A DNA stretch of 64,000 nucleotides from positions 1-64,000 of IMG/VR virus record IMGVR_UViG_3300027541_000009. One strand, 5' to 3'. How positions within the stretch are numbered: the stretch's first letter is position 1; every line of letters starts with the position of its first letter. The position numbers were made by a program, and so were the translations under genes. Under the pieces are notes generated by a model. It did no database searches. It had not been told where the DNA came from and saw only the letters and a program-made list of their open reading frames with translations. Of this stretch, positions 2,662-43,294 are shown piece by piece.

Positions 2662-3486
2662 ATGATGACTTCACAAAGTCCAAGAATTTACATATACAAA
2701 ATTACCTTTGAGGAAGTTTTGTATTACTATTACGGTGTTCATAAAGAAAAAACATATAATGAGTATTATATGGGTTCTCCTATAACAAACAAATGGTGTT
2801 GGGAACTTTATACTCCAAAGAAACAAATATTGGAATTATTTGAGTTTAGTGATGAAGGTTGGATAAAAGCACAAGAAGTTGAAAAAAGATTAATACGACC
2901 TTTTTTTAATACTGATAAATGGTGTTTGAATGAGGGTTGTGGAGGACAAGTTTCTCTTTCTATTAGAAGAAAAACTGGTAAAAATATCGCAGAAAGAAAT
3001 AAAGAAAAAAATATTGGTATATTTGTTATGACGCAAGAAGAACTATCTAAAGCAGGTAGAAAAGGTGGTAAAATGGGAGCAAGAACACAAATGCAAAATA
3101 AAACTGGAGTGTTTGGTAGAACCAAAGAACAAATGACGGAAGATGGTAAAAAGGGAGCACAAAAAGTAAAAGAACTTGGTATAGGAATATTCTCACTAAC
3201 AAGTGAAGAATTATCTGCCTCTGCTAAAAAAGCATATGCGAATGGACTTGCTAAATTACCAAAAGAAGTAAGAAGTGAATATGGTAGAATGGGAGCAAGA
3301 ACACAGATGAAAAATGGAACTGGTATTTTTTCTTTAACACCAGAACAAAAAAGTGAATTAGCAAAAAGAAATAACGCACAAAGATGGATGTGCCTTGAAA
3401 CTGGTTATGTTTCTAACTCTGGTGGTTTATCAAAATACCAGAAAGCAAAAGGTATTGATACTTCTAAAAGAAAACGAATAGCATAA
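2662..3486 (+). CDS. GIY-YIG (Seg-like) free-standing homing endonuclease
   Basis: N-terminal RIYIYKIT...YYYYGVH...YMGS, downstream E and CLN; basic repeated C-terminal modules. Confidence 0.7.
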   Translation: MMTSQSPRIYIYKITFEEVLYYYYGVHKEKTYNEYYMGSPITNKWCWELYTPKKQILELFEFSDEGWIKAQEVEKRLIRPFFNTDKWCLNEGCGGQVSLSIRRKTGKNIAERNKEKNIGIFVMTQEELSKAGRKGGKMGARTQMQNKTGVFGRTKEQMTEDGKKGAQKVKELGIGIFSLTSEELSASAKKAYANGLAKLPKEVRSEYGRMGARTQMKNGTGIFSLTPEQKSELAKRNNAQRWMCLETGYVSNSGGLSKYQKAKGIDTSKRKRIA

Positions 3487-3544
3487 GGACACTTTACGAA
3501 CTGGAACACGGGCACTTGAAAACGGATGCCCTTTGTCGTATAAT
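3487..3544 (+). promoter_or_regulatory. early promoter with upstream palindromic box
   Basis: GGACAC-N8-CTGGAAC; TTGAAA-N17-TATAAT. Confidence 0.85.
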
Positions 3545-3567
3545 ATTTTCATACACACAGACACCTG

Positions 3568-3756
3568 ATGACTGACGAACAAATCCTTAACCTTGCTGAA
3601 AAGCATCTTGAAGTATTGGTTGATGATTATGAGGGAATAGAGTATTTTTCTTCAACCAAAAAACAAATGGTTGAGTTTGCCCTAAAAATCCACGAAATGG
3701 GTTATAATATGGGAAGAATGGAAGGACTTGAAGTAGGACTGACAAACAATGATTGA
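3568..3756 (+). CDS. hypothetical protein
   Basis: First ORF after promoter. Confidence 0.7.
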   Translation: MTDEQILNLAEKHLEVLVDDYEGIEYFSSTKKQMVEFALKIHEMGYNMGRMEGLEVGLTNND

Positions 3757-4033: not shown

Positions 4034-4814
4034 TATAATCTTCAAAACCAAAGGCAAAGAAACATTCCGTATTCCTTTTCCAACTCCTGGAACCAAATGT
4101 CCCGAAACTAAACTTGAAGTGAAAGAAATGACTGAATATCAACCAACTCCACAAACACCAGAACAAGTAGATGAAGGTCTGCGTAATGCTTTTAGACAAG
4201 CAATGAAAGATGGTGTGATGGATGCTACTCCTTACCTGAAACAAATGAATTCCAATAAAGAAATTGAACTTCTAAAACAAGAAATCAAAATGCTCAAATC
4301 CAAACTTTCCCTTCTGGAAGAACTGGAAAAAACAAAATCACCAGTAGAAGAAGCATACAAAGAGTGGTGGGGGCAATATCCTGAATTGGAAACTGATTCC
4401 AAGTATGATGATATGAGGTGGCAGGGTTTCCAAGCAGGTTTTCAGGCAGCATATGAAGAGAAGGTAAGAGAAGATGATTATTATAATGAGGTTATTACAC
4501 AAAAAAATACTGAACCACAGTGTCCTGATGAACCAGAGTATTATGATGAAGTAGAATGGGATGAAAAAGATAATCCAAAACCTATGGATGAAGTTGTGAA
4601 TAGATTGGTGAGAAAATACGAAGCACAAAAACTTTTTAATAGATTGGTAGATGAACTTGGTTATGATTTTGATGCTTGTAATGATGTTGTAGATTTGGTA
4701 GAAGATTGGTTGCCGAAAGAACAATCAGCAGCAGGAAGTCAGAATGTAGATACTGAATTACTTGTGGATGGATTTAATCACTGTTTGCAGAAAATGAAGG
4801 AGATGCTACGATGA
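4026..4814 (+). CDS. hypothetical acidic/coiled-coil protein
   Basis: 262-aa ORF with coupled ends. Confidence 0.75.
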   Translation: MDDIIFKTKGKETFRIPFPTPGTKCPETKLEVKEMTEYQPTPQTPEQVDEGLRNAFRQAMKDGVMDATPYLKQMNSNKEIELLKQEIKMLKSKLSLLEELEKTKSPVEEAYKEWWGQYPELETDSKYDDMRWQGFQAGFQAAYEEKVREDDYYNEVITQKNTEPQCPDEPEYYDEVEWDEKDNPKPMDEVVNRLVRKYEAQKLFNRLVDELGYDFDACNDVVDLVEDWLPKEQSAAGSQNVDTELLVDGFNHCLQKMKEMLR

Positions 4815-4993
4815 CTAAACGAAACATAAAACAACAACTCCAGTATTCCTACTATGAGGATATGGAGGATGGTAGAACAATTGAAACGATTGATTATGAT
4901 GCCTTGATTGAAATTATTGATGATTTGTATGATAAAATTGAAACACTTCAAAGAGATAATGAATTTCTAAAATCTTATGCTTGGGAACGATGA
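4811..4993 (+). CDS. hypothetical protein
   Basis: ATGA overlap. Confidence 0.7.
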   Translation: MTKRNIKQQLQYSYYEDMEDGRTIETIDYDALIEIIDDLYDKIETLQRDNEFLKSYAWER

Positions 4994-5172
4994 CTGACGA
5001 ACAAATTGATACAATGCTCCAAATGCATAGGTATCTTATTCATTGTGAGATGAGTTATTTGGTTGATAAAACATTGAACCAAGATGACCGTGCTGCCGAA
5101 CTTCAAGAAAAAGTAAATAACGAAGAATGGACTAAATTTGCTCTATGGTTGAAGAAGATTAGAGATGAATAA
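4990..5172 (+). CDS. hypothetical protein
   Basis: Start moved to ATG 4990 (ATGA overlap). Confidence 0.7.
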   Translation: MTDEQIDTMLQMHRYLIHCEMSYLVDKTLNQDDRAAELQEKVNNEEWTKFALWLKKIRDE

Positions 5173-5977
5173 TGAAATGCCGTGGGTTAATCTCACACAA
5201 GAAGAAGTAGAAGAACTCCGCAGAAAAAAACACGAATTAACGGAATATGGAAAACAGAGGTTGAGAGAACTTATCTACAAACAGGATATGAAAAAAATGG
5301 AAGATGCTGCAAAAGACCTTGTTCTTGAAAATCTTACGCACGAAGAAATGCTTTCTCTTGCTGAACAAAGAGAAGCAGAAAACAAAGCACTTGAAGCATT
5401 AGACAAACTTTATGATGAAAATGGTGAAGGTATGAAACAACTTGCTGAAGATGAAAGAATCAAAGTGATTCAAACCGCTTGTGGTGCGATTGATAAGTAT
5501 TCTGATGCTCTCAAAGCACTTGCTGAAACAGAAAAGGTAGAGTTGCGAGTAGAGTTGGAAGCAAAGAAAAAAGAAAACTTTCAAGAACTTGCTGATGCTT
5601 GTATGAAAGATTATGAACAAAAGTATGGTCGTGATGTATTTCCAGTGGATGAGCATTGGGTGTATATGGTTTCCGAATATTTCGGCACAGGGGAGGGTCA
5701 AACTGTGTGTGTTATGATGACACAGGCAAATCCTGGTCATCCTGAAGATTTTGAAAACTCTACCAATAAGTATGTTGCTTGTACTACACAGCAATATCGT
5801 GCTGTGAGAGCATTCCATGAGCAGTTTGGCACTTGGTATCTTCATGGTCTCAGATTTCTCACTAAAGAAGATTTCTTTAGTGAATATTCATACTACATTC
5901 CTCCAGCAATGATGAAACTTCTCAATAGGAGTTGCTTCAAAGACTTCTACACCCGTGTTCATTACAATTTCTCATAA
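5165..5977 (+). CDS. hypothetical protein, coiled-coil N-terminal half
   Basis: 270-aa ORF. Confidence 0.75.
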   Translation: MNNEMPWVNLTQEEVEELRRKKHELTEYGKQRLRELIYKQDMKKMEDAAKDLVLENLTHEEMLSLAEQREAENKALEALDKLYDENGEGMKQLAEDERIKVIQTACGAIDKYSDALKALAETEKVELRVELEAKKKENFQELADACMKDYEQKYGRDVFPVDEHWVYMVSEYFGTGEGQTVCVMMTQANPGHPEDFENSTNKYVACTTQQYRAVRAFHEQFGTWYLHGLRFLTKEDFFSEYSYYIPPAMMKLLNRSCFKDFYTRVHYNFS

Positions 5978-6273
5978 TGACTTACGACCTAAACCAAGAA
6001 GCAAAACCATTCTCTTACACTCGTGAAGAGTTGTTTGAGTGTATCACAAAGATTATTACTTATCCTCTTGTGATTACTACCGATTCCGAAAGAGCAAAGG
6101 CAGCAGCAATCTTTATGGTTTTCAGTGACTATCTTGGAAACTATACCGAGAGTGATAATAATGGTGGGCATTATGTTTATGAATCTGATGCCACTGACTT
6201 TGAGGGTTATGTGATGGAAAGGTTTGGGTATCTAAACTATGGTGATGCAAGTGCAACGGAGTTGATGCGATGA
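5977..6273 (+). CDS. hypothetical protein
   Basis: TAATG overlap; start at 5977. Confidence 0.7.
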   Translation: MTYDLNQEAKPFSYTREELFECITKIITYPLVITTDSERAKAAAIFMVFSDYLGNYTESDNNGGHYVYESDATDFEGYVMERFGYLNYGDASATELMR

Positions 6274-6455
6274 GTAGATTTCAAGAAAATCCTGATGAGA
6301 TTGTGCTTCAAGACATTCAAATGTTTCATCTTGAAAGTATGAATGAACGCACCCTTTGGATTGGTGTTTATACTGAAGATGACAAAATCTATCACTTAAA
6401 CATTTCTGCTGATGGAGATAAACTACGTTATTATTGGAGCAATGAAACAGTTTAG
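6270..6455 (+). CDS. hypothetical protein
   Basis: ATGA overlap. Confidence 0.7.
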   Translation: MSRFQENPDEIVLQDIQMFHLESMNERTLWIGVYTEDDKIYHLNISADGDKLRYYWSNETV

Positions 6456-6972: not shown

Positions 6973-7030
6973 GTGACACTTTTTGTACTGACCCCAACAT
7001 TCCCCGTTGGGGTTCAATCCAGGGTATATT
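6973..7030 (+). promoter_or_regulatory. early promoter of the Ubl/JAB genes
   Basis: GTGACAC-N8-CTGACC box centred 41.5 bp before TATATT. Confidence 0.7.
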
Positions 7031-7090: not shown

Positions 7091-7351
7091 ATGTCTTTCT
7101 TCGATCAAATCCGCACTGCTGATCAATCTGCTCCTGTGACTCTGCTTCTGAATGAAGAAAGCATCACTCTCAATGCAGATCAATTCCGTGGTAAAACTGT
7201 TTCCCAACTGTTCGGAGAGTATGGTCACACTCTTGGGAATGTCTCTCGCATCAACCGTTTTGTTCTCAACGGTGAGGTTGTTCCTGGTGATACCGTAGTG
7301 CGTCCTGGTGAAACTGTGCGGGGTGCAGTTTCTTCCGAAAGCAAAGGTTGA
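7091..7351 (+). CDS. ubiquitin-like (beta-grasp) modifier, PRTRC protein C-like
   Basis: 86 aa; beta-grasp-like pattern (KTVSQLF...FVLNGEVV.GDTVVRPGETV); ends ESKG; first gene of a JAB-E2-E1 cluster. Confidence 0.75.
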   Translation: MSFFDQIRTADQSAPVTLLLNEESITLNADQFRGKTVSQLFGEYGHTLGNVSRINRFVLNGEVVPGDTVVRPGETVRGAVSSESKG

Positions 7352-7372
7352 TCACAATAACTCTGATTTGAA

Positions 7373-7405
7373 ACCACATCAGTTTTTCTGATGTGGTAAT
7401 TTTTT
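7373..7405 (+). terminator. hairpin/terminator after Ubl gene
   Basis: ACCACATCAG-TTTTT-CTGATGTGGT followed by AA and a T run. Confidence 0.7.
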
Positions 7406-7426
7406 ATTATTCTACACACTAAATCA

Positions 7427-8512
7427 ATGACTGCTGTTACTGAAGAAATTCAAGATCAAACTGTCCAACAACAAGAAACTCCTAGTGTTCTTCGCACTCG
7501 TAGAGATGGTGTGTGGGAAATTTATGATGGTCCTTGGGGTTCTTATCTACGGGTAACTGATGATCCCGAAGCAAATGTAGAAATTACCGAAGATCATCTT
7601 AAAAAGTTTGAACTGAAAAAAGATATTCACCGCATCCCTGCAGAACTTTGGGCACGTTGGGTTAAACTTTGTTTCTATTTTGTAGACAAAGTTCCCAACT
7701 CTGTGGAAGTTTCTATTCGTATTCTTCGCAGTCAGGAAGATCCTAGTCAATATCGTTTTCTCGTTCCTCGTCAGAAAGTCTCTGGTGCTTCTGTGCGAGT
7801 GGAAAACTTTGATGAGGCAGTTGATATTGAGACTGGTGAAGAGATCGAACAGTATCCCCCTTCTGGTTGGATTCCTGTAGGATCTTCTCACTCTCACAAT
7901 ACCATGCAAGCATTCTTCTCAGGTATTGATGACAAATATGAACTTGATGATCCTGGTATTCACCTAGTCATCGGTTCAGTTGACACCAAAAACATGAAGT
8001 ATACTATTGCATCTTCTGTTGTTGGAAGTCGTCGTCGGTTTGAGTTGCCTTATGATAATCTCGTAGATGCAACTCCCGTGGAAGGTGTAAATTTCCATCC
8101 TAAAGTGATTGATTATGTTGATTGGTCAACACCTACTGTAGTTACTCCTAAGAAGTCTGGTGGTTCTTTCCTTAAAGTTCCTACCCAATGGACTAAAAAG
8201 GTATCGGATACTCCCAAAAATAACTTCAACAGTATGGAGTATTGGGGTTGGAATGATTCCGATGATTATAATGATCCTTTTTATTGGAATACTTCTTATT
8301 CTAATAAAGATGATGATATGGGTTTAGATTCAGTTAAGATCTGGCACATTACAGATACACTTAATGATTTTATGAATCAGAATAAAACTGAAGTCCACAA
8401 ACTCAATAATCTTAGGGAAGAACTCTATGACTTTTTGAGTGACTTGGAAGTTCTGTTGGATTCTCAAATCGAACAGAACTTCGAAGAACTTATTGAAAGT
8501 AACGTATATTGA
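7427..8512 (+). CDS. JAB/JAMM metallopeptidase (deubiquitinase-like), PRTRC protein A-like
   Basis: Exact H-x-H-x7-S-x2-D motif (HSHNTMQAFFSGID) with an upstream Glu (SVEVS). Confidence 0.88.
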   Translation: MTAVTEEIQDQTVQQQETPSVLRTRRDGVWEIYDGPWGSYLRVTDDPEANVEITEDHLKKFELKKDIHRIPAELWARWVKLCFYFVDKVPNSVEVSIRILRSQEDPSQYRFLVPRQKVSGASVRVENFDEAVDIETGEEIEQYPPSGWIPVGSSHSHNTMQAFFSGIDDKYELDDPGIHLVIGSVDTKNMKYTIASSVVGSRRRFELPYDNLVDATPVEGVNFHPKVIDYVDWSTPTVVTPKKSGGSFLKVPTQWTKKVSDTPKNNFNSMEYWGWNDSDDYNDPFYWNTSYSNKDDDMGLDSVKIWHITDTLNDFMNQNKTEVHKLNNLREELYDFLSDLEVLLDSQIEQNFEELIESNVY

Positions 8513-8520
8513 TATACCCC

Positions 8521-8578
8521 TGGACAGTTTCCGAACTGTCCAGGATTCCCCCATTTAAAGAGAAATGTCTGCTACACT
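8521..8578 (+). promoter_or_regulatory. early promoter overlapping the 5' end of the E2-like ORF
   Basis: TGGACAG-N8-CTGTCCA palindrome centred 41.5 bp before TGC-TACACT. Confidence 0.65.
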
Positions 8579-9554
8579 ACTGGAACAACCAAGAACGGAA
8601 ATGTCTGTAATTTTTCCAACTAAACCTGCAACTGTGAAACTGCATCCTCTTCCTAAAAATGCAGAGGCAATTACATATCGAGTAGAAGATAATATTATTC
8701 TTTCTGCATGGATGCCTGATGGTTATCATACTGTGCAAGAGCAATATGAAATGACTGATGATGATTTTTACCATGAGAACTGTGAGGGATGTGAACGTAA
8801 TTGTTATTCATTTCTAAATCAGTATACTGATGAAGAAACTGATGAAGTAGATTGGGATCAAGTTCCTGGTGGTTATTATGGACATTGCAATGTTTATGAT
8901 GAAGGTTATTGTGGTCAAGATTGTCCTGAAGGTCATGTAAAAAAAGATTCCAATCTGGAATTTGATATTTCTAACATGGTGTTTGAAATTTCACTCACTC
9001 ATCTTGGAGATTCTGCACGTTTTACTCCAGTTGCTGATAGTGCATATCTTGCCGCAGGTGTTTTTACTAATGATAATGTAAAAAGTACAGAAACTAGGAT
9101 GCCCGCAAATGTTTTCGGTTCCGAAGACAACCCTGAAGGTATTTGCTGGGGATATAATAGCAAACCACATACTCTCAGGGAAATTGTAACTGAATATTAC
9201 AACACTCCATTTAACAATGATCTCACACCCATCGAGTGCTTTGAGGAAAATTGTAGGAGTATTCGATCTATGAAAAATCGTCATGACTTCTGCAGTACAG
9301 ATGATAATTATCTTTGCCAAGGTGCAGATCAACTAATCATGGTAGATGCAGAGAAAAATAAGACTGCATTTTTCCATCTCCTGACTGCAGGATACAAGTC
9401 ACTATCAAAAGCACCCCATATTATGATACTCCCTGTCAAAGAGAGTACTATTCATAAAAATGGAAATGTATTTGAAGGATATTTGACAGATGAAGATTCT
9501 GTGGGAAAGCAGTGGTTTATTACAACTGATGGTCTTTTGATTGGTCAGGTGTGA
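8565..9554 (+). CDS. prokaryotic E2-like protein (Prok-E2_D/PRTRC protein B-like)
   Basis: PANVFGSEDNPEGICWG then YYNTPFNNDL, matching the E2 N-x-G.IC active-site pattern; lies between JAB and E1; alternative start ATG 8601. Confidence 0.7.
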   Translation: MSATLLEQPRTEMSVIFPTKPATVKLHPLPKNAEAITYRVEDNIILSAWMPDGYHTVQEQYEMTDDDFYHENCEGCERNCYSFLNQYTDEETDEVDWDQVPGGYYGHCNVYDEGYCGQDCPEGHVKKDSNLEFDISNMVFEISLTHLGDSARFTPVADSAYLAAGVFTNDNVKSTETRMPANVFGSEDNPEGICWGYNSKPHTLREIVTEYYNTPFNNDLTPIECFEENCRSIRSMKNRHDFCSTDDNYLCQGADQLIMVDAEKNKTAFFHLLTAGYKSLSKAPHIMILPVKESTIHKNGNVFEGYLTDEDSVGKQWFITTDGLLIGQV

Positions 9555-9608
9555 CACTTTTTCAGGTGTCCACTACCCCTTCAAAAGTCCATCCTCACCT
9601 GCTATAAT
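9551..9608 (+). promoter_or_regulatory. early promoter of the E1 gene
   Basis: GTGACAC-N8-GTGTCCAC, 41.5 bp before TGC-TATAAT. Confidence 0.8.
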
Positions 9609-9629
9609 AACTTCATAATCAAAAAACAA

Positions 9630-10343
9630 ATGAATTTCACTCCCGACAAAACTTTCGTTATTGGTTCTGGTGGAAGTGGTGGTCATCTTATTCCAGCACT
9701 TGCTCGTCTCCTTGCATATCACAAAAATACGCAAGATTCTACTCTAACCGTCATTGATGGGGATGAGTATGAAGAAAAGAATATGACTAGGCAAATTGTT
9801 GCACCTTCTCAGGTGGGATTGAACAAAGCACAAGCAATGAAAGACTTCTGTAATTATCAGGGTCTTGAGAACGTAGATTATAAAGCAGATTTCATTTCTG
9901 CTTCTACGTTTATTCCAATGCTTCGACGTTCAGAAGCACCTATGGTCATTGCATGTGTAGATAATGATGCAACTCGTCTTGCACTTATCAATGCAATCAA
10001 TTCAATGCCTGAAGATAAAGACTTTTTCTTCATCACTCCTGGTAACTCTGATGGAGTTGAAGATGTAAAAGGTCAAACTCTTTGGTATGGTAGAATCGGT
10101 GGAGTTAAAGTTGGTTGTAATCCTGCTCTAGTGTATCCCAACATTGATAATCCTCAAGATAGTATTCCACATCAAGGATCTTGTGCTCTTCATGCACCTT
10201 CTCGTCCTCAACTGATTGCTGCTAATTTTATGGCAGCATCTATTACTCTGATGGTGATTCAAAATCTTTTGGATGGTCAAATTGATCCATCTCAAAGTTC
10301 TATGTTCTTTAATCTTCGTAACCTGAAGACATCTGCTGCATGA
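9630..10343 (+). CDS. ThiF/E1-like ubiquitin-activating enzyme
   Basis: IGSGGSGG, DGDEYEEKNMTRQ, NKA, CVDN..TR, candidate catalytic Cys in QGSCA; no CxxC zinc motifs. Confidence 0.9.
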   Translation: MNFTPDKTFVIGSGGSGGHLIPALARLLAYHKNTQDSTLTVIDGDEYEEKNMTRQIVAPSQVGLNKAQAMKDFCNYQGLENVDYKADFISASTFIPMLRRSEAPMVIACVDNDATRLALINAINSMPEDKDFFFITPGNSDGVEDVKGQTLWYGRIGGVKVGCNPALVYPNIDNPQDSIPHQGSCALHAPSRPQLIAANFMAASITLMVIQNLLDGQIDPSQSSMFFNLRNLKTSAA

Positions 10344-10422: not shown

Positions 10423-10758
10423 ATGTCCACCGAAACTATTGCTGTCAACGACAATCTAGTTAAAATTGATAATGTTTTGACTGCTTTGAACTACCTCCTA
10501 GAGGAAGTTCAGACTCGAAAAGAACAAATTGTCAATTCTATTGACGTTGGTGAAAAAGTTCGCAATGAAATCAACACCCGTCGATTCAAAGATGAATTGT
10601 TTTATTACATTCGCAATGAATATGGTGAGGGTCTTTGTCGTGAAGTTGCATTTATGGTAATGGAACGAATTGATGATGATATTGAAGCATTTATCAATTC
10701 TCGGGTAAACAAAGCACTTGCTGCTGCAGGTGTCAATCTAAACAACAATAACGTCTGA
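10423..10758 (+). CDS. hypothetical helical protein
   Basis: ORF after promoter. Confidence 0.75.
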   Translation: MSTETIAVNDNLVKIDNVLTALNYLLEEVQTRKEQIVNSIDVGEKVRNEINTRRFKDELFYYIRNEYGEGLCREVAFMVMERIDDDIEAFINSRVNKALAAAGVNLNNNNV

Positions 10759-11753: not shown

Positions 11754-11780
11754 TTAGATTCTAATTAGAATCTAAATTAT

Positions 11781-11868
11781 GCGAGTGAGACTTGGTAGTC
11801 AGAGAGGTCTTATAAACCTTTTCCGCCAGATTAGCGGCTTTGAGATGGTTCGAATCCATCCACTCGTA
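11781..11868 (+). tRNA. tRNA with UAU anticodon (Ile) and long variable arm
   Basis: GCGAGTG/CACTCGT acceptor stem, AGGT-CTTATAA-ACCT, CCGC/GCGG variable stem, GATGG-TTCGAAT-CCATC. Confidence 0.8.
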
Positions 11869-11890
11869 TTACTCTAAACTACACTTAGAG

Positions 11891-11922: not shown

Positions 11923-12339
11923 ATGATAGGAAAATGTAAAAACTGCGAAAAAAACTTTAAGTATTCTCCATCACAAGGAAAAGGAATTTATTGTTCAAAT
12001 AAATGCCAACAAAAAGATTACTACAAACAAAATATTACCGATTGGTTATCCAAAAAAATAACTGGAAAGGTTAGAGATGGAAGACCAAGTGATTTTGTTA
12101 GAAGGTATATGCTTGAAGAAGCAGGATACAAATGTTCTGAATGTGGTTGGGGAAAAGCAAATCCAACAAATGGTATTATCTATCTTGAAATAGACCACAT
12201 AGATGGTTCAAGAAAAAATGGGTATAGGGAAAATCTTAGAGTATTATGTCCCAATTGCCATACCTTAACTAATACCTACAAAACACTAAACAAAAATATA
12301 GGGTATCACAAATCAAGAAAACAACAATTAAATGATTAA
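11923..12339 (+). CDS. HNH homing endonuclease inside the tRNA cluster
   Basis: CSECGW...LEIDHIDG...N..ENLRVLCPNCH; N-terminal CxxC...YCSxxC. Confidence 0.88.
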   Translation: MIGKCKNCEKNFKYSPSQGKGIYCSNKCQQKDYYKQNITDWLSKKITGKVRDGRPSDFVRRYMLEEAGYKCSECGWGKANPTNGIIYLEIDHIDGSRKNGYRENLRVLCPNCHTLTNTYKTLNKNIGYHKSRKQQLND

Positions 12340-35521: not shown

Positions 35522-38500
35522 ATGTCAGACATAAAGAAAGTAAAAATTCAGAATATTATTGAGAGTCAAATTCCAGAATTCTTAAATGAGGAAAATCCTC
35601 TTTTCAAAGAATTCTTAAATCAGTATTACATATCTCAAGAATATCCAACAGGTGCAATAGATTTAGCAACAAACATTTTAGAATATAAATCTATTTCTGG
35701 ATTTAATAATGAGAAATTTTTCAGTGCCTTTGTACCTCCCGTTGTAACGAAAGCAATTCTTTCAATAGATGATGTTATTAATGTTTCCCATACAATAGGA
35801 TTTCCTGATAGTTATGGATTAATCAAGATTGATGATGAAATTATTACATATACATCTAAAACAAAAACAACTTTTGAAGGTTGTGTAAGGGGTTTTAGTG
35901 CCATTGATAAGATCCCATCTGATTCACAATTAGATTCAATTTACTTTACTTCCACTGAAGCACAGGATCACCCAATAAATTCATCAATTAATAATTTGAA
36001 TTTATTGTTTTATCAAAAGTTATTTGAAAAGTTTAAGTTCCAATTCTTACCTGGATTTGAGAATAGAAACTTTGTTCCTGGAATAAACTTACAAAATATT
36101 TTAACAAGGGCAAAAGATTTTTATACTACTAAAGGTACTGATGTATCATATAAAATTCTTTTTAAAATTTTATATGGAGTAGACATAAGTTTAATTAAGC
36201 CTCAAGAATATATGCTGAGGCCTTCTGATAGTAATTATTTTGTTACTAAAAATATTTTAGTTGAAAAAATCTCAGGAGATGTCAATCCTTTAGATCTTGA
36301 TGGTAAAACATTATTTCAAAATATCCCAAATGTAGGTACTGCAAGTGCTGCAATTTATAATGTAGAGTATAGACCTGTTGAGGGTAGAAATTTTTATGAA
36401 ATATCTTTAGATTCTACTTCATTCATTTTTGATTTTATATCAACTAAAAAGACAAATTTATCAGAATCTGAACCTTTAAATACAAATTCTCTTTTAGTTG
36501 ATAGTACTATTGGATTTCCAAAATCTGGAACATTACTAATAAAAACTAAAAATGCAAATATTCCCATAGTAGCTAATTACTCAGATAAGACTGCAAATCA
36601 ATTTTTAAATGTTTCTGGAATAGTCGCACCACTAAATGAAGGTGATGAAATTATTGAAAATAATTTTGCATATTCATACCTAGGTTCAGATATAGTTGAA
36701 TTTAGAATACTGAACATTATAGATACTGTCGATTATTCACAATCATCTAATTTAAGAGTAGATGATAGAATCTCACTATCTACATTTGGATTAGATCTCT
36801 TAGATAAACCGGAATTTAATTCTTGGATTTATAATATCCCAACAACTCACAATATACAGTCAGTAACACCAACATCTGAAGATAGTATTTGGAGAATTGA
36901 ACTTAAAGATGCAGTAAAATTTACCATAGGTGAGTCTATTAAATTATTAAATCCAGATTTTCCTGATGACAATGAATTGATTGTTACTGTAAGAACTACT
37001 ATTAATACTAAAACTATAGAAGTTTTAAGTCCAGTAGTTATTACAAATAAATCTCAAATTAAAAAAATTATTAGAAAGTCCAATGTATTAGCATTTCCTG
37101 AAGTTAACAGTTTGACCTCAGGAGTTCAAAATACATACTCAGATGAGCAAGTAAACAATTTATATGTAACATCATCTGGATTACCAGATTATCAAGTCTT
37201 AGCTGATAGTAGAGCAGTTCGAGTTAGTACTCCTCCGATGCCAGTTAATGCTGGATCTGCTACTACTACGATTCTTAATACAGATAAAGTACATAGATTT
37301 TATACTGGAGAAAAAATATATTATTTTCCATCATCAGTATCCGGAATTATTACTGGGCAATACTATGTTACTACAGTAGGAAATAGTAACGATAGTTCCC
37401 AAATTAAACTTTCTTTAAGTAATAGTGATCTATATTCGGAAAAATATATTAATGTAGGATATGGAGTAACTAATGATTATTTTGTAAAAAATGATTATGA
37501 AAATAAAACTCTAGAGCATCAAAAACTATTAAAAAAAATTACTTTAACTAAAGAAGAAAATACATTAACTAGTCCAGAAGAAATATCGACAAATAATAAA
37601 ACTGTAGGAATTTTAGTAAATGGAGTAGAAATTTATTCATCTACTCTATATGATGAAAACATCTATTATGGAAAGTTAGATAATGTTCTCATCACCAATA
37701 ATGGATCTGGATATGATGTAATTAATTACCCCAAAGTAGATGTATTCGATTCTGAAGGATATGGTGCAAAAGTATGCCCTTCAATTACAGGATCTGTTAA
37801 AGAAATTAAAATAATACGTCCAGGTATAGGATATCAATCTAAACCTAAAATTTCTATAATTGGTGGAAATGGATCAGGTGCAGTTTTAAAACCAAACTTA
37901 ATAAAATCTAGAATTACCTCAGGATTTAGAGGTGATGGTAATGGTGTAAACCCATCTACAGATGTTATAACATTTGTAAGTAATCATAATTTTGACGATG
38001 GTGAGCAGGTTATATATTTAAATAATTCAAATTCTCCTATTTCACCATTACAAAATAATTCAGTTTATTTTGTAGGAAGAGAAAATGATACTCAGATTAA
38101 ACTTTACGAAAATCGAGAAAATGCTGCTAAAAAACAAAATAATATCAATTTAGTAGGAATAAGTTCAGGATTTCATTATTTTAGAACACTGAATAGTAAA
38201 AATACAATAACAAAAATTTATGTTGAAGATTCTGGATCAAATTATTCAAATAAATTCATAAGAGTACCTTCAATCCAAAGTACAAATGTAAATGAAGTTA
38301 ATGGTGTAAACACTTTTGACAATTATATTTTTGCAAAAAATCACACCTTTAAAGATGGAGATTTAGTTGTATATTCATCTACTGAAACTGAAATAGTAGG
38401 ATTGAATACAGAAACCCAATATTATGTTCATATAATCGATGAAAATAAATTTAGATTATCTTTAGCAGGTGTAGGTAATAGTACAAATATAGAAAATTAT

Positions 38501-41500
38501 AAAAATAAAAAATATGTAAAATTTAATAGCATTGGAGTAGGTACTCATACTTTTTCATATCCTCCGATTCAAATAGTAATCGAATCTGTTCCTGAAATAT
38601 CATCTTCAGAAATTATTGAACCTATCTTAGAACCTGTTGTCCTTGGATCATTTGACAATATTTTTATTGAGGAAAGTGGGTTCAAATATGGTGTACCAAA
38701 TATAGTAAACTTTCATAGAAGACCAAATATTGGAATATCTAGTATTACTTCAGAAGCAATATTAAAACCAATTGTACTTGATGGAAAAGTTGTTGATATC
38801 CAAATTTTAAGTCATGGAGCTGGATATACTAATGATATAGATGTAGTAATTTCTGGATCTGGAAGATATGCAGAATTTAAACCAATTGTAGAAAATGGTG
38901 AGATTTCAGATGTTATTATTCTCAATGGTGGAATTAATTATCTTCCAAAAAATACTGAGTTGAGAATTAAAAGAAGAGGTATAGACGCAAAGTTTATTGG
39001 AAATATTTTTGAATGGAAAATAAATCAAGTAGAAAAAAATAAAAGATTACTTACAAATTCAGATGAAGGAGTATTAGTTCCAAGTAAAAATCAACAGTAT
39101 GGATTACAATTTATAAATTTCTACCCACCGAAATTATTAAGAAAGAGTTTAAATGATCACTTAGATAATCAAAATAGAGAAGTATTGACTGAACTACATT
39201 CACCAATACTTGGATGGTCATATGATGGATATCCAATTTATGGACCATATACTAAAATTGGATTAGAAATGACTAAAGTGAGAAGTAGTTATCAAAAAAG
39301 AGTAGAGACTGATAGTAAACTTAGACCTATTGGACAGGGATTTCCAGATGGATTTTTCATACAGGATTATCAGTACGATTCTTCAACTGGAGATTTGGAT
39401 CAATATAATGGAAAATTTGTAATTAATAGTGATTTCCCGAATGGAACATATGCATATTTCTTAACTATTGATAATGAAATAAATTCAAATCCCGTTTATC
39501 CATATGTTTTTGCAAGTGAATTAAAAAATTCAATTATTAAAGAGAACACTAACCCTGCCTTTAATCAAGATTTAAATATTTCAGACTTAGGATTGATTAG
39601 AAATGTTGGTCCTTACTATATAAATTCAGTAAATTCAAATTATAATTTAATAAACAAGGTAAAAGATTCATATAGACAAACTTTTATAGTTAATGAAATA
39701 GAATCTTCAGGAATTGATGGGATCAATGTATATAATGCGGGGCAAGATTATAAAGTAGGAGATATTATATTTTTTGATAACTCTGGCACAGATGGTACAG
39801 GAATTTCTGCAGTAGTATCTGGAATTAAAGGAAAAGATATTTCAAATTTACAAGTTGGAATTAATACTTTTAATGAAACTACTTTTATAAAATCATCTAA
39901 TAGAATTACTGGAATTACAGAAGTTCCACATGGATTTAGAAATGAAGATAGAATTGTTGTATCTTCAATGTCTAATATTGATTTTAGATATCTAGAAGGA
40001 TTTAGACAAATTATTGTTAACGAAAAATCAGTAGGATTGTTGAAAAATATTGGAACTATCCTAGAAACTGGAACTCAAACTTCTATAGATGTAAATGATA
40101 CTTCTGTATTTGAAGTCAATGATTATATTAGAATCGATAATGAATTATTACAAATTACAAAAATATCAGAGCAACAGTCAAAACTTTATGTGAATAGACT
40201 TGAAAATATTGGTGTTCATACTGTTGGAATCTCCAGTGTAACATTACTTCCTCGTAAATTTACATATTTCTTAAATGATTCTTCAGGTAGAGACATCATT
40301 GGAAATAATACTTTCTATTTTAATCCTTATAGTGAAGTAGGTATTGGAAGTACAACTACAGTGTATGAACAATTTGATGGTTCTCTATTAACTATTCCAT
40401 CAAAATCAATTTATATTCCAAACCACAAATATCAAACTGGTCAAGCATTAACTTATGGAGTTGGCATAGGTGGAACTGGAATGTTAGTTTCAAATAATTT
40501 AACATCTCCAAGTTATAATCTTGATGATGGACAAACGGTATATGTAGTAGATTTAGGTAGAGATTTTATTGGACTATCTACTATAGGTTTTGTATCAATT
40601 TCAGGAATAGGTACAGATTATAACTCAGTATACTTCTTACAAAATCCACCAGGAATAGGAATTGGACATTCTCTCACAACTCAAAATGAAAAAATATTGG
40701 GAGATGTTAAAAATTACTTTATTGACGTTGTAACTAATGATGATCACCAATTACTTACAGGAGATAAAGTAAAATTAAATCTCAATCCCAATGATAGTAG
40801 AACTATCAAATTAAGATATGATCCAAATATTAGAAAAATAACTACAGATTTTGTAGGATTTGCTGGAACTTATGTTAATTTAGAAACATCTGAAATTTAT
40901 ATTGAAAATAATACTTTTAAAACAGGTGATAAAGTAGTTTACTATGCAAGTCCATCGGGAACAATTGGAAACTTAGTAGATAATGGAACATACTTTATCA
41001 TTAAATATAATTCAGATAAAGTTAAATTGGCAGAATATCCATCAGATGCTAAAAGTGGGATTGCTATCAGTTTCAGTTCTACTGAAACTGGAACTCACAA
41101 TTTAGCATTAATTAATCCACCACTAGAGATTACAAAAGGAGATACTGTTACATTTGATGTTTCAGATCCAAGTCTTCTTGAGATGAATTTTAAATTATAT
41201 AAAGATTTAAATTTGAAAAAAGAGTTAGAAAGTTATAAGTATCAAACTAATTCGGGTGACTTTAAGATTAGGACTGCAACAACTCAATATCCATCTGAAT
41301 TATATTATACATTCTTGTCTAATTCTAAATTAGACACCAGAAAAGATGAGATATCAAAAGATGATGAAGTAATAGGTAGAAACATGATTAGGATTATACC
41401 CAGTCAGTTTAGAAAAGAATATCCTATAATTTCAACTGGAAATACTTCCTTTAAGATAGATTTCCAATCTATTCCAGAAAACACAAATTATAATGTTAAT

Positions 41501-43294
41501 ACTGGCGTTTCTACAATATTCTATACTTCAAATTCTAAATTTATTACTGGACCAATTAATGATATTAAAATAAACTTTAAAGGAAAAGGATATAGAAAAG
41601 TACCAAAAATTAAAACCATACGAAGTGTATCTGGTAAAAATGCCACACTAGAACCAAGATCCAGTTCGATAGGAAAAGTAAGTATACTGAATAGAGTCAA
41701 AGATGGATTTGATTATCCAACAGATGCTACATTAAAACCATTTTTAAGTTCTCCTGCAATTATACAAGTTAAAGATATTTTAAGAGTTGAAAAAATTAAT
41801 ATTTTATCAGGAGGATCAGGATATAATACTCCACCATCATTAAGAGTTATAGGAAGTAATGAATTAAAATTATCTGCATCTATACAGGGAGGTTCAGTCA
41901 CTTCAGTAAAAGTAGATAAAAATGTAAATGATTTAAAAAATCCGTTAAGAATTGTTCCAACAAGAAATTCAAATGGATATGATATTGATAATATTACTAG
42001 ATTGGGAACCAATGTAACATTAGAGTTAATTAATTCAAACTCTCAAATTTATCCATTGGTTTCATCTGGATATGGGAAAACAGAAACAGAATTCCCATTT
42101 GCAGTTGGAGACGAGATTTTTATTGAAAATTGTAGAGTAGACTTGAGTGAGACTGATGAATCTGGAAATATAATACCAAAAAATAATTATAATTCTTCAA
42201 ACTATGGATATAGATTCTTTAAAGTAACTGGAATAAACACAAATAATTATACTGTTACTTATAGTATGGATGGAATAGGTTCTAATTTGGGAAATTATGT
42301 TAATGATTTTGGTTATGGTAGTGTTGTCAACAGAAAAAATATGGCAGAATTTGAAATGATTCTTGCTGATGATCTATCATATTTTTCTAAAGAGACTGTT
42401 GTTGGTATTGATAATTCTGGAAGAGAAGTATTTTCTGCAGAAATAATGGAGAATGGTTGGGATAATGAAATTAATCAGATGAGAGTGATTAACGCAAAAG
42501 GTACTCTTAAGGAAGGAAATAGAATCAAAGGTTTGATATCAAATCTGACTGGAACAGTGACAAATGTAAATTCATTTAACATTCCAACTTCTGTTGGAAT
42601 TTCTAGAGAAAAAGTTAATGACTTTGGTGATAGAAATGGATTACTCAATGATTACCAACAAAGAATCTCTGATAATAACTACTATCAGAAGTTTTCATAT
42701 TCAATTAAGAGTACTTTACCATATTCTACTTGGAGAGAGTCTGTAAAATCATTAGTACACCCTGCAGGATTTAAAGAATTCTCTGATCTTGATGTTGTAA
42801 GTATTGGTTCTACAATATTAAACAAAGATATTTCAGTAAACGTATTGGGATCATCACTAGACTTAACTATAAACATTGATAGTGAAAAATCAATGTATAC
42901 TAGAAATAATTTTGGAATGGTTACAGAGGAAGATCAATTTGAAGATGGATCGATTCAGAGAATAATATTCGATGAAGGTATTGCACTTAAATCTTATATT
43001 TTAAATAAAACTAATAAAGTCATACCAATAGATGATATTAGTCCACAATTTACTGGATTTACAACTACTACTGGAGGGGTAGTTGTTGGATTAACCACAT
43101 TTAAACTGAAAAACAAAGGAAATCCACTATTCTATAAAGAATTCAATTCCTCAAGTTCTTCTATTGTCAATTTAAATAACAATTCATTTAAAATTATCAA
43201 TCATAACTTCCAATCTGGTCAAAAAGTTTCATATGAAGTGGTGTCATCAGAGGCAATACCTACTGCAATAGTTGACAATATTATCGAATATTAA
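35522..43294 (+). CDS. gp7: baseplate wedge initiator gp7-like, N-terminal part
   Basis: ESQIPEF...Y..KGT..S.KILFKILYG; HSPILGWSYDGYPIYGPY; YYQKFSYSIKS...VHPAGFK; position between gp6 and gp8. Confidence 0.8.
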   Translation: MSDIKKVKIQNIIESQIPEFLNEENPLFKEFLNQYYISQEYPTGAIDLATNILEYKSISGFNNEKFFSAFVPPVVTKAILSIDDVINVSHTIGFPDSYGLIKIDDEIITYTSKTKTTFEGCVRGFSAIDKIPSDSQLDSIYFTSTEAQDHPINSSINNLNLLFYQKLFEKFKFQFLPGFENRNFVPGINLQNILTRAKDFYTTKGTDVSYKILFKILYGVDISLIKPQEYMLRPSDSNYFVTKNILVEKISGDVNPLDLDGKTLFQNIPNVGTASAAIYNVEYRPVEGRNFYEISLDSTSFIFDFISTKKTNLSESEPLNTNSLLVDSTIGFPKSGTLLIKTKNANIPIVANYSDKTANQFLNVSGIVAPLNEGDEIIENNFAYSYLGSDIVEFRILNIIDTVDYSQSSNLRVDDRISLSTFGLDLLDKPEFNSWIYNIPTTHNIQSVTPTSEDSIWRIELKDAVKFTIGESIKLLNPDFPDDNELIVTVRTTINTKTIEVLSPVVITNKSQIKKIIRKSNVLAFPEVNSLTSGVQNTYSDEQVNNLYVTSSGLPDYQVLADSRAVRVSTPPMPVNAGSATTTILNTDKVHRFYTGEKIYYFPSSVSGIITGQYYVTTVGNSNDSSQIKLSLSNSDLYSEKYINVGYGVTNDYFVKNDYENKTLEHQKLLKKITLTKEENTLTSPEEISTNNKTVGILVNGVEIYSSTLYDENIYYGKLDNVLITNNGSGYDVINYPKVDVFDSEGYGAKVCPSITGSVKEIKIIRPGIGYQSKPKISIIGGNGSGAVLKPNLIKSRITSGFRGDGNGVNPSTDVITFVSNHNFDDGEQVIYLNNSNSPISPLQNNSVYFVGRENDTQIKLYENRENAAKKQNNINLVGISSGFHYFRTLNSKNTITKIYVEDSGSNYSNKFIRVPSIQSTNVNEVNGVNTFDNYIFAKNHTFKDGDLVVYSSTETEIVGLNTETQYYVHIIDENKFRLSLAGVGNSTNIENYKNKKYVKFNSIGVGTHTFSYPPIQIVIESVPEISSSEIIEPILEPVVLGSFDNIFIEESGFKYGVPNIVNFHRRPNIGISSITSEAILKPIVLDGKVVDIQILSHGAGYTNDIDVVISGSGRYAEFKPIVENGEISDVIILNGGINYLPKNTELRIKRRGIDAKFIGNIFEWKINQVEKNKRLLTNSDEGVLVPSKNQQYGLQFINFYPPKLLRKSLNDHLDNQNREVLTELHSPILGWSYDGYPIYGPYTKIGLEMTKVRSSYQKRVETDSKLRPIGQGFPDGFFIQDYQYDSSTGDLDQYNGKFVINSDFPNGTYAYFLTIDNEINSNPVYPYVFASELKNSIIKENTNPAFNQDLNISDLGLIRNVGPYYINSVNSNYNLINKVKDSYRQTFIVNEIESSGIDGINVYNAGQDYKVGDIIFFDNSGTDGTGISAVVSGIKGKDISNLQVGINTFNETTFIKSSNRITGITEVPHGFRNEDRIVVSSMSNIDFRYLEGFRQIIVNEKSVGLLKNIGTILETGTQTSIDVNDTSVFEVNDYIRIDNELLQITKISEQQSKLYVNRLENIGVHTVGISSVTLLPRKFTYFLNDSSGRDIIGNNTFYFNPYSEVGIGSTTTVYEQFDGSLLTIPSKSIYIPNHKYQTGQALTYGVGIGGTGMLVSNNLTSPSYNLDDGQTVYVVDLGRDFIGLSTIGFVSISGIGTDYNSVYFLQNPPGIGIGHSLTTQNEKILGDVKNYFIDVVTNDDHQLLTGDKVKLNLNPNDSRTIKLRYDPNIRKITTDFVGFAGTYVNLETSEIYIENNTFKTGDKVVYYASPSGTIGNLVDNGTYFIIKYNSDKVKLAEYPSDAKSGIAISFSSTETGTHNLALINPPLEITKGDTVTFDVSDPSLLEMNFKLYKDLNLKKELESYKYQTNSGDFKIRTATTQYPSELYYTFLSNSKLDTRKDEISKDDEVIGRNMIRIIPSQFRKEYPIISTGNTSFKIDFQSIPENTNYNVNTGVSTIFYTSNSKFITGPINDIKINFKGKGYRKVPKIKTIRSVSGKNATLEPRSSSIGKVSILNRVKDGFDYPTDATLKPFLSSPAIIQVKDILRVEKINILSGGSGYNTPPSLRVIGSNELKLSASIQGGSVTSVKVDKNVNDLKNPLRIVPTRNSNGYDIDNITRLGTNVTLELINSNSQIYPLVSSGYGKTETEFPFAVGDEIFIENCRVDLSETDESGNIIPKNNYNSSNYGYRFFKVTGINTNNYTVTYSMDGIGSNLGNYVNDFGYGSVVNRKNMAEFEMILADDLSYFSKETVVGIDNSGREVFSAEIMENGWDNEINQMRVINAKGTLKEGNRIKGLISNLTGTVTNVNSFNIPTSVGISREKVNDFGDRNGLLNDYQQRISDNNYYQKFSYSIKSTLPYSTWRESVKSLVHPAGFKEFSDLDVVSIGSTILNKDISVNVLGSSLDLTINIDSEKSMYTRNNFGMVTEEDQFEDGSIQRIIFDEGIALKSYILNKTNKVIPIDDISPQFTGFTTTTGGVVVGLTTFKLKNKGNPLFYKEFNSSSSSIVNLNNNSFKIINHNFQSGQKVSYEVVSSEAIPTAIVDNIIEY

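Follow-up and report, generated by a model that had tools for sequence, protein, structure and literature searches.

A predicted ubiquitin-like protein-tagging gene cassette carried by an uncultured T4-like cyanophage

Ubiquitin-like protein conjugation in bacteria has been characterised only on the host side (CBASS, Bil, and Bub), and a viral locus that appears to encode a modifier, its activating (E1) and conjugating (E2-like) enzymes, and a tag-removing protease raises the question whether a phage may carry a tagging cascade of its own. Such a locus is present in the window analysed here, namely, positions 1 to 64,000 (64,000 nucleotides) of the IMG/VR record IMGVR_UViG_3300027541_000009, which represents an uncultured T4-like phage whose cyanobacterial host is inferred only from the similarity of structural genes. 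Four consecutive genes of the + strand, 7091-7351 (86 aa), 7427-8512 (361 aa), 8565-9554 (329 aa), and 9630-10343 (237 aa), were proposed in an earlier note to form a complete Ubl-JAB-E2-E1 set, comparable to that of the PRTRC cassette. Our inspection of the sequence confirmed the presence of these ORFs and of their characteristic motifs, and results of our analysis support the core of this interpretation, although the identification of the E2 is indirect and protein ligation is inferred. The note did not mention a co-conserved fifth gene, a hairpin downstream of the Ubl gene, two-residue tails in the homologues of the Ubl, or the distant versions of the cassette in cultured phages.

The product of the first gene (7091-7351, + strand) is a predicted beta-grasp protein, which ends with SESKG, with the terminal Gly86 encoded by the codon 7346-7348. 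Its AF2 model has a beta-beta-alpha-beta-beta-beta topology with a disordered tail, and the Foldseek search with this model indicated similarity to Ubl, SUMO, NEDD8, TGS, and TtuB structures with a probability of 1.00 (E about 2e-3). The Gly86 is invariant in 33 homologues, 20 of which contain exactly two additional, variable residues after it, as in a precursor, which calls for a processing protease. The protein is ThiS/MoaD/SAMP-like and resembles ThiS and MoaD more than Prok_Ub. A language-model/structure atlas search returned ThiS clusters at 0.92 with 188 shared features, and weak ThiS Pfam hits were obtained for 5 of 33 family members, while none of the 33 was hit by the Prok_Ub profile (PF14454), and hhalign gave an E-value of only 0.3. 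A terminator-like hairpin with a 10-bp stem, followed by a T-run, is located between the Ubl and JAB genes (7373-7397, + strand). A strong hairpin followed by a T-run occurs at the same position, but with unrelated sequence, in 7 of 10 related loci, and possibly functions as an attenuator, although contigs from RNA libraries do span it.

The second gene (7427-8512, + strand) encodes a JAB/JAMM metalloprotease. Its product was hit by the Prok-JAB profile PF14464 (E 4.7e-6; 26.9 bits vs. the gathering score of 25) and by the PRTRC_A model (E 3e-5), and contains the motif H155-S-H157-x7-S165-x2-D168 (7889-7930) preceded by Glu94. The residues E94, H155, H157, S165, and D168 are invariant in 15 JABs of cyanophage, Vibrio, Salmonella, and Bacillus phages and PRTRC-A, all of which are hit by Prok-JAB. 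The fourth gene (9630-10343, + strand) encodes a ThiF-family, E1-like adenylyltransferase (PF00899, E 6.6e-10, above the gathering score), for which PRTRC_ThiF is the best NCBIfam match (E 1.2e-16), and the closest solved sequences are those of UBA5 and Uba1. It contains the GSGGSGG, DGD..KNMTRQ, CVDN, and QGSC motifs. The adenylation motifs and the G-S-C motif are invariant in 12 relatives, and the single invariant Cys185 (codon 10182-10184) is conserved in 9 E1s, including PRTRC ThiF and the versions of Bacillus and Salmonella phages.

The assignment of the third gene product (8565-9554, + strand) as an E2-like protein is the least direct. The protein contains the PANVF...EGICWG...YYNTPF motifs, and its AF2 model (pLDDT 86) shows an N-terminal beta domain with a four-Cys cluster (C73, C76, C108, and C120), a central core of about residues 125-240, and a C-terminal alpha/beta domain (about 240-329). 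The order of secondary structure elements in the core, namely, a four-strand meander, an Asn loop, the Cys, and two helices, matches that of a UBC core. Searches with this protein gave no direct Pfam, NCBIfam, or PDB match, and the whole-chain Foldseek search against the PDB did not confirm the E2 fold, the best E2-type hit being Tsg101 UEV at E 2.8. Neither ORF3 nor its 31 close relatives are hit by the Prok-E2_D profile (PF14460), which represents the PRTRC protein B family, and the hhalign comparison with PRTRC-B is marginal (E 0.0016, probability 16%). However, the family profile of ORF3 finds 130 representatives, and 4 of 100 distant members are hit by Prok-E2_D. Two bridging proteins link these families. 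One of them (P0295) is hit by the ORF3 family profile at E 2.7e-5 and itself hits Prok-E2_D at 27.9 bits (GA 25), while the other, a Brasilonema plasmid protein, scores 129.5 bits for Prok-E2_D and 29.8 bits for the family profile. Additionally, 80 of 100 named hits in the atlas search were Prok-E2_D, with a structural TM of 0.61, and UQ_con and E2-CBASS clusters were also listed. Residues N182 (codon 9108-9110), C194 (codon 9144-9146), N217, and D219 are invariant in 100 divergent members at a mean column identity of 14%. These results suggest that the core is a divergent Prok-E2_D-like domain.

The gene order Ubl-JAB-E2-E1 is kept in all complete related viral loci, down to 34% E2 identity, as well as in three much more distant contigs (L024, L026, and L028), and distant versions occur in cultured Bacillus and Salmonella phages. 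This co-conservation is of notice, as its absence was named in the earlier note as an argument that would refute the proposed cascade. In every related locus the E1 gene is followed by a gene of unknown function (10423-10758, + strand; 111 aa), the products of which are 25-61% identical. A weak relative of this gene follows the E1 in L024. No Pfam hit was obtained for its product, and the atlas search returned only unnamed viral clusters. The left edge of the module is marked by a junction (7008-7019) at which co-occurring strains differ upstream: contigs from four RNA-library runs all break there, and three of these runs carry the same alternative upstream sequence. Genes upstream of the cassette are not conserved in relatives, whereas the cassette is. 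The cassette sequence is present in 24 riverine metatranscriptome libraries, but as RNA libraries can contain DNA, this does not prove transcription, and our promoter scan was uninformative. Homologues in Salmonella phage Arash were detected as protein by LC-MS (PMC10585845).

We consider it more likely than not that this cassette is a virus-borne, reduced, and diverged relative of the PRTRC system, i.e., operon type 6d (PMC1779556), and is inferred to act in protein conjugation. No biochemical result for this cassette or for any PRTRC/6d system was found in the literature that could be searched, and by homology only, one may propose that the 86-aa protein is a tag, which, where it is synthesized with a two-residue tail, is trimmed by the JAB protease to expose the invariant C-terminal Gly. 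In the phage studied here, the protein already ends at that Gly, and the retention of the JAB even where the tag is mature points to a second, deconjugating role, which would make the mark reversible. The E1 would adenylate Gly86 and take the tag onto Cys185 as a thioester, to pass it to Cys194 of the E2-like protein, with Asn182 helping catalysis as in UBC enzymes. The extra N- and C-terminal domains of the latter would take the place of an E3 and choose the target, to which the tag would be joined by an isopeptide bond. The hairpin probably lets the tag be made in excess over the enzymes. The weakest step of this interpretation, and one that we propose only tentatively, is that the phage tags host proteins during takeover or counters host defences. 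The presence of ArdC-type anti-restriction genes and a RecBCD inhibitor among the neighbours of distant versions is in line with this interpretation.

Other explanations appear less likely. The same conjugation chemistry could be directed to the phage's own proteins, such as virion or assembly proteins, or the enzymes could be packaged and delivered with the DNA. In phage Arash, the E1 homologue (gp246c) and the weak Prok-E2_D protein (gp248c) are annotated as structural proteins, which means that they were detected by LC-MS in purified particles, and the known phage Ubl-JAB pair, lambda TAPI/TAPK, serves tail assembly (PMC1779556). However, 116 of 272 Arash proteins were called structural, and the authors note carry-over of abundant enzymes (PMC10585845), while in our window the cassette lies about 23 kb from the structural module, among small non-structural ORFs, which makes this possibility unlikely. 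More doubtful is a role in superinfection exclusion, i.e., as a weapon against competing phages or other mobile elements, by analogy to Bil, which tags the tail protein of a rival phage. [quoted passage not shown] 57-80% for the E1), as expected for a component involved in an arms race. Nevertheless, the PADLOC hits of the E1 cover only its nucleotide-binding N-terminus, no hits were obtained for the Ubl, JAB, or E2, and the close E2 family is essentially virus-only, with one 4-kb MAG contig among 185,579 species genomes.

We regard as improbable that the cassette is a sulfur-carrier system, in which the E1 would thiocarboxylate the beta-grasp protein, as with ThiS, MoaD, or TtuB, to supply sulfur for a cofactor, tRNA, or DNA modification, with the JAB only trimming the carrier. 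The ThiS/MoaD-like features of the tag, the secondary NCBIfam hits of the E1 to ThiF and MoeB, the tRNA cluster 1.3 kb downstream, and the binning of phage thiF/moeB as sulfur-relay genes in virome surveys (PMC10134843) speak in its favour. However, no rhodanese, cysteine desulfurase, ThiG/MoaE, or TtuA-like partner is adjacent or co-conserved, in the window or in the distant contexts examined, the E1 has no rhodanese domain and no conserved Cys other than C185, and a Cys-bearing E2-like protein is strictly co-conserved. ThiS-like tags, such as SAMPs and TtuB, may also serve as protein modifiers. Equally improbable in our view is that ORF3 is not a catalytic E2 and its Asn...Cys block is a convergent or structural feature, with the E1 alone ligating or adenylating the tag or another carboxylate, as in MccB/PaaA-type ThiF chemistry. 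While the lack of a direct profile or PDB fold match and the marginal profile-profile score would agree with this, the two independent bridging proteins, the same register of every weak alignment, the atlas results, the invariant residues, and the UBC-like order of secondary structure elements argue against it.

The comparison with PRTRC (TIGR03734-03741) indicates both similarities and clear differences. Common to both are a small beta-grasp protein ending in K-G, a Prok-JAB protease, an E2 (of Prok-E2_D type in PRTRC, linked to it indirectly here) with a conserved Cys and no upstream His, and a short ThiF-type E1 with a conserved Cys, encoded by separate genes in one operon on a mobile element. 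The K-G ending of PRTRC protein C, indicated in the earlier note, was verified on one example, which ends in T-K-G, as does a small ORF of phage Arash. However, the gene order is Ubl-JAB-E2-E1 instead of C...B-A-ThiF, and no ParB or PRTRC_E hit was found among the adjacent ORFs scanned, which were not all ORFs of the window, while the co-conserved set comprises only the Ubl, JAB, E2, E1, and the 111-aa protein, without ParB, protein D, or protein E. The JAB lacks the JAB-N (DUF2016) domain, which was found only in the plasmid PRTRC-A and in none of 14 phage-type JABs. The E2 is larger, with the four-Cys module and an extra C-terminal domain, and the scores are far below the equivalog cut-offs (60.8 vs. 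144.75 bits for PRTRC_ThiF, TIGR03736; 23.7 vs. 101.8 bits for PRTRC_A), which indicates homology of the E1 but not equivalog status. In addition, the cassette is carried by T4-like phages and not by plasmids or ICEs.

PRTRC itself has no known function, and we found no report of a phage cascade of this kind in the searchable literature. A strictly co-conserved phage version is a tractable entry point to this class, and it raises the possibility that viruses of bacteria, like viruses of eukaryotes, use protein tagging to manipulate the cell. Distant versions exist in cultured Bacillus and Salmonella phages, where genetics is possible. A broader, and still tentative, possibility is that phages run a reversible tagging cascade, with target recognition built into the E2, to modify host proteins or disarm host defences during infection, and that, if so, the PRTRC/6d class is at heart a tool used by mobile elements on entering a cell and not a host defence. 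The mostly viral origin of the Prok-E2_D-like clusters nearest to ORF3 would fit this. No solved structure matches this E2 or JAB by sequence, and the phage thiF/moeB hits counted in virome studies as sulfur-relay auxiliary metabolic genes may in part be E1s of such cassettes.

Like the cassette described here, Bil (BilABCD) comprises separate Ubl, E2, JAB, and E1 genes without an E3, its Ubl can need C-terminal processing, and its JAB both processes and deconjugates (PMC11601596), but Bil is host-encoded, its Ubl is ISG15-like, and of the four proteins studied here only the E1 gave a weak hit, to BilD (E 0.0026). Type II CBASS Cap2/Cap3, with its MBL and Pycsar variants, shares E1 and E2 chemistry and a JAB protease, and the PADLOC E1-E2 models hit E1 residues of about 2-120 (E 5.6e-8). 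However, Cap2 is an E2-E1 fusion that conjugates a CD-NTase rather than a beta-grasp tag, whereas here the E1 and E2 genes are separate, and no CD-NTase or effector is present among the neighbours. The Bub (6E/DUF6527) pathway is also a diverged bacterial Ubl/E1/E2/peptidase operon on mobile elements, of unknown biological role, but it works through Tyr/Ser oxyesters and lacks catalytic Cys, while both the E1 and the E2 of the phage cassette keep an invariant Cys. The ThiS-ThiF, MoaD-MoeB, TtuB-TtuC, and archaeal SAMP-UbaA systems share a ThiS-like beta-grasp protein with a C-terminal Gly and a compact single-domain E1, but have no E2, and the sulfur-carrier pathways need sulfurtransferase partners. 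The lambda/T1 TAPI (Ubl) and TAPK (JAB) proteins are likewise a phage-encoded Ubl-JAB pair, but one without E1 or E2, encoded in the tail module and with the Ubl fused to another domain.

The four plus-strand ORFs listed in the earlier note lie exactly where the note placed them and contain the motifs that it described. While ORF2 passes the gathering score of Pfam for Prok-JAB and ORF4 passes it for ThiF, searches of ORF1 and ORF3 against Pfam, NCBIfam, PHROGs and PADLOC gave no useful match. In NCBIfam, the best matches are PRTRC_A in the case of ORF2 and PRTRC_ThiF in the case of ORF4 (E 1.2e-16), although both fall far below the equivalog cut-offs. The contig, of which the first 64 kb were analyzed (IMG/VR UViG_3300027541_000009, 284 kb), encodes baseplate, neck and sheath proteins that are T4-like, and the closest counterpart of its gp6, about 61% identical, is encoded by Synechococcus phages of the S-SSM7 type. 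A cyanobacterial host is thus likely, but this is inferred only from the similarity of structural genes. No near-identical phage is present in GenBank: a megablast search of GenBank phages with the cassette found no match, and neither did a tblastn search of phages with ORF3. Three giant ORFs of 2590, 1614 and 2493 aa (35522-43294, 43395-48239 and 49839-57320, plus strand) lie within the baseplate/tail module, next to the gp6-like and wedge genes.

The product of ORF1 is predicted to be a ubiquitin-like tag. About 90 metagenomic clusters are 54-97% identical to it, and in an alignment of 33 of them the Gly residue that ends the protein studied here is invariant, whereas 20 of the 33 carry exactly two further residues of variable sequence. 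This is the pattern of a modifier that is made as a precursor and trimmed to expose its Gly. The AlphaFold model of ORF1 (pLDDT 77.5) has the beta-beta-alpha-beta-beta-beta order of a beta-grasp, with a disordered tail, and Foldseek matches it to Ubl domains, SUMO, NEDD8, TGS and TtuB at a probability of 1.00, with E of about 2e-3 and TM of 0.5-0.58. By language-model features and weak Pfam hits, it is nearest to proteins of the ThiS/MoaD/SAMP type and not to Prok_Ub, and its profile-profile comparison with PRTRC protein C was not significant. It still shares the K-G ending with PRTRC protein C and with a small ORF (107-307 of the Arash locus, ending T-G-T-K-G) beside the cassette of Salmonella phage Arash.

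ORF2 encodes a JAMM protease. Residues E94, H155, H157, S165 and D168 are invariant in 15 proteins, which come from cyanophage relatives, Vibrio, Salmonella and Bacillus phages, a gut phage and a plasmid PRTRC-A, and all 15 of them hit Prok-JAB. The PRTRC-specific N-terminal domain (DUF2016) was found only in the plasmid protein. A search of PDB sequences with the JAB profile gave only a non-significant hit (E 0.65) to an uncharacterised protein. In three related loci, L013 (5152-5392), L015 (5157-5397) and L019 (4942-5178), a group I intron (Rfam RF00028, 55-63 bits against a gathering score of 50) splits the JAB gene exactly between the codons for H-S-H and N-T-M-Q-A-F-F-S-G of the JAMM motif, and the reading frame resumes after it. 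The JAB gene of the window has no intron.

The product of ORF4 is an E1-like protein, the nucleotide-binding and adenylation motifs of which are invariant among 12 relatives. It contains exactly one invariant Cys, C185 (codon 10182-10184), which is also conserved in PRTRC ThiF, in a Clostridium plasmid protein and in the Bacillus and Salmonella phage homologues. It has no rhodanese domain and no second conserved Cys pair. The closest solved sequences are those of UBA5 and the Uba1 adenylation domain.

The critical case is that of ORF3, for which direct searches were negative. The whole-chain Foldseek search of the PDB with a good model (pLDDT 86) gave no significant hit, PDB sequence searches with the ORF3 profiles found nothing, and a Pfam scan of 31 close relatives gave nothing relevant. 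However, an exhaustive profile search found 130 representatives. In 100 divergent members, with a mean column identity of 14%, the only invariant residues are N182, C194, N217 and D219, while W195, G196, G276 and G327 are nearly invariant. Several results tie this family to Prok-E2_D. Four of the 100 members hit Pfam Prok-E2_D, and one of them, designated P0295, is found by the ORF3 profile at a library-wide E of 2.7e-5 and passes the gathering score of Prok-E2_D (27.9 against 25 bits) over most of the domain. A Brasilonema plasmid protein, which is an unambiguous Prok-E2_D (129.5 bits), is hit by the broad ORF3 profile over the active-site block at 29.8 bits. The profile-profile comparison of the close ORF3 family with PRTRC protein B was not significant, and a further comparison with this protein was marginal (E 0.0016), but every weak alignment puts the Asn...Cys-x-Gly block in the same register. 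In the ESM Atlas, 80 of the 100 named clusters nearest to residues 120-245 are Prok-E2_D and mostly viral, and the best structural neighbour is a Prok-E2_D cluster (TM 0.61), with UQ_con and CBASS-E2 clusters appearing lower down. Additionally, the secondary structure of the model in residues 128-238 has the order of a UBC core without its first helix, namely, a four-strand meander, a loop with N182, C194, and then two helices.

Taken together, these results suggest that residues of about 125-240 form a very divergent E2 of the Prok-E2_D type, although the assignment is indirect. This is the family of PRTRC protein B, which Iyer et al. (PMC1779556) described as an E2 with a conserved Cys but no upstream His. 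The other parts of ORF3, an N-terminal beta domain with four invariant Cys (C73, C76, C108 and C120) and a C-terminal alpha/beta domain, are additions that are absent from the PRTRC-B-type proteins of roughly 250 aa, and we infer that they recognise the target.

The set of genes is co-conserved. In the 16 IMG/VR loci, in which the identity of the E2-like protein is 34-100%, all complete ones keep the order Ubl-JAB-E2-E1 on one strand, with identity ranges of 57-80% for the E1, 53-86% for the Ubl, 48-62% for the JAB and 34-52% for the E2. The genes upstream are not conserved. A gene encoding a protein of 111 aa and of unknown function (10423-10758) follows the E1 gene everywhere, and a search of the Atlas with its product returned only unnamed viral clusters. 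Some relatives have insertions of about 1.2 kb inside the cassette, as in locus L010 (between Ubl 3368-3697 and JAB 4905-5921) and locus L008 (between E1 7103-7816 and the counterpart of the fifth gene, 9044-9388), and in locus L021 the Ubl-JAB gap is of 365 nt, so the module tolerates insertions between its genes. Much more distant contigs keep the same gene order. One of them, L028, has two tandem tag genes (4162-4476 and 4540-4815), both ending E-S-K-G, and lies downstream of an ArdC/MPTase-PolyVal anti-restriction gene.

The close E2 family is essentially virus-only, as it was found in only one 4-kb MAG contig among 185,579 species genomes. Distant E2-like/JAB/ThiF sets are carried by cultured large phages, where they are annotated only as hypothetical, ThiF or 'structural protein'. 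In Bacillus phage vB_BceM_WH1, they comprise gp214 (E2-like), gp215 (JAB) and gp216 (ThiF), and in Salmonella phage Arash they comprise gp248c, gp247c and gp246c. The Arash proteins were detected by LC-MS in purified particles.

A 10-bp hairpin with a T-run lies between the tag and JAB genes (7373-7397), and a comparable hairpin with unrelated sequence occupies the same place in 7 of 10 relatives. We read it as a putative attenuator that lets the tag outnumber the enzymes. A scan for promoters found fewer sites than the shuffled sequences (18 against 24.9) and is therefore uninformative with regard to the timing of expression. Twenty-four riverine metatranscriptome libraries hold the cassette, although RNA libraries can hold DNA, and thus its transcription is not proven by their content. 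Contigs from four of those libraries match at about 100% identity and break at 7008-7019, where three runs carry the same alternative upstream sequence. This marks the left edge of the module and indicates that co-occurring strains differ just upstream of the cassette. In two metatranscriptome runs, very short contigs (34-57 nt) of very high depth (about 330, against 5-17 for the neighbours) correspond to positions 6300-6353, inside the ORF 6270-6455, which could represent a small abundant RNA or a sequence shared with other organisms.

The layout of the cassette, the family matches and the shared Cys and K-G signatures place it nearest to the PRTRC system, that is, operon type 6d. It is not a member of this system, as the NCBIfam cut-offs are missed by a wide margin, DUF2016 is absent, no ParB or proteins D and E were found among the adjacent ORFs scanned, the tag is not recognised as Prok_Ub, and the gene order differs. 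Bil, type II CBASS and Bub are more distant, and membership in Bil and CBASS was considered and rejected. While types 6A, 6B, 6C and 6E have been characterised, we found no characterisation of 6d/PRTRC, and no report of a bacteriophage carrying a full tag-E1-E2-JAB set, in the literature that we could search, which omits most subscription journals, so that an earlier mention elsewhere cannot be excluded. Results of our analysis indicate that the cassette is a real and well-conserved feature, and that it appears to be a new, virus-borne variant of a kind of system that is known but functionally unexplored.

The chemistry that we propose is inferred from homology and conserved residues. It would include trimming of the tag by the JAB where needed, adenylation and formation of a thioester at C185 of the E1, transfer to C194 of the E2, the choice of target by the extra domains of the E2, and reversal by the JAB. 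The retention of the JAB even though the tag of this phage is already mature argues for a deconjugating role. With regard to the biological role, we tentatively favour an action on host proteins or host defences, given the non-structural neighbourhood of the cassette, the presence of anti-restriction and RecBCD-inhibitor genes next to its distant versions, and the fast evolution of the E2. The tagging of the phage's own proteins remains possible in view of the proteomics of Arash particles, and so does a role in competition with other phages. A sulfur-carrier role is unlikely, because no sulfur-transfer partner is conserved while a Cys-bearing E2-like protein is.

An ORF at 2662-3486 (plus strand) is homing-endonuclease-like (phrog_314), and a Cys-rich ORF of 138 aa (11923-12339, plus strand), located between the tRNA genes, looks HNH-like by eye. 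A 90-nt tRNA-like gene at 11780-11869 (plus strand) has an 8-bp acceptor stem, a long variable arm and the anticodon loop CUUAUAA (anticodon UAU, Ile/AUA). It is called by ARAGORN but missed by the tRNA model of Rfam at the gathering score, while the tRNA-Sec model gives 35.8 bits against a gathering score of 47, and its fold has a z-score of -3.2.
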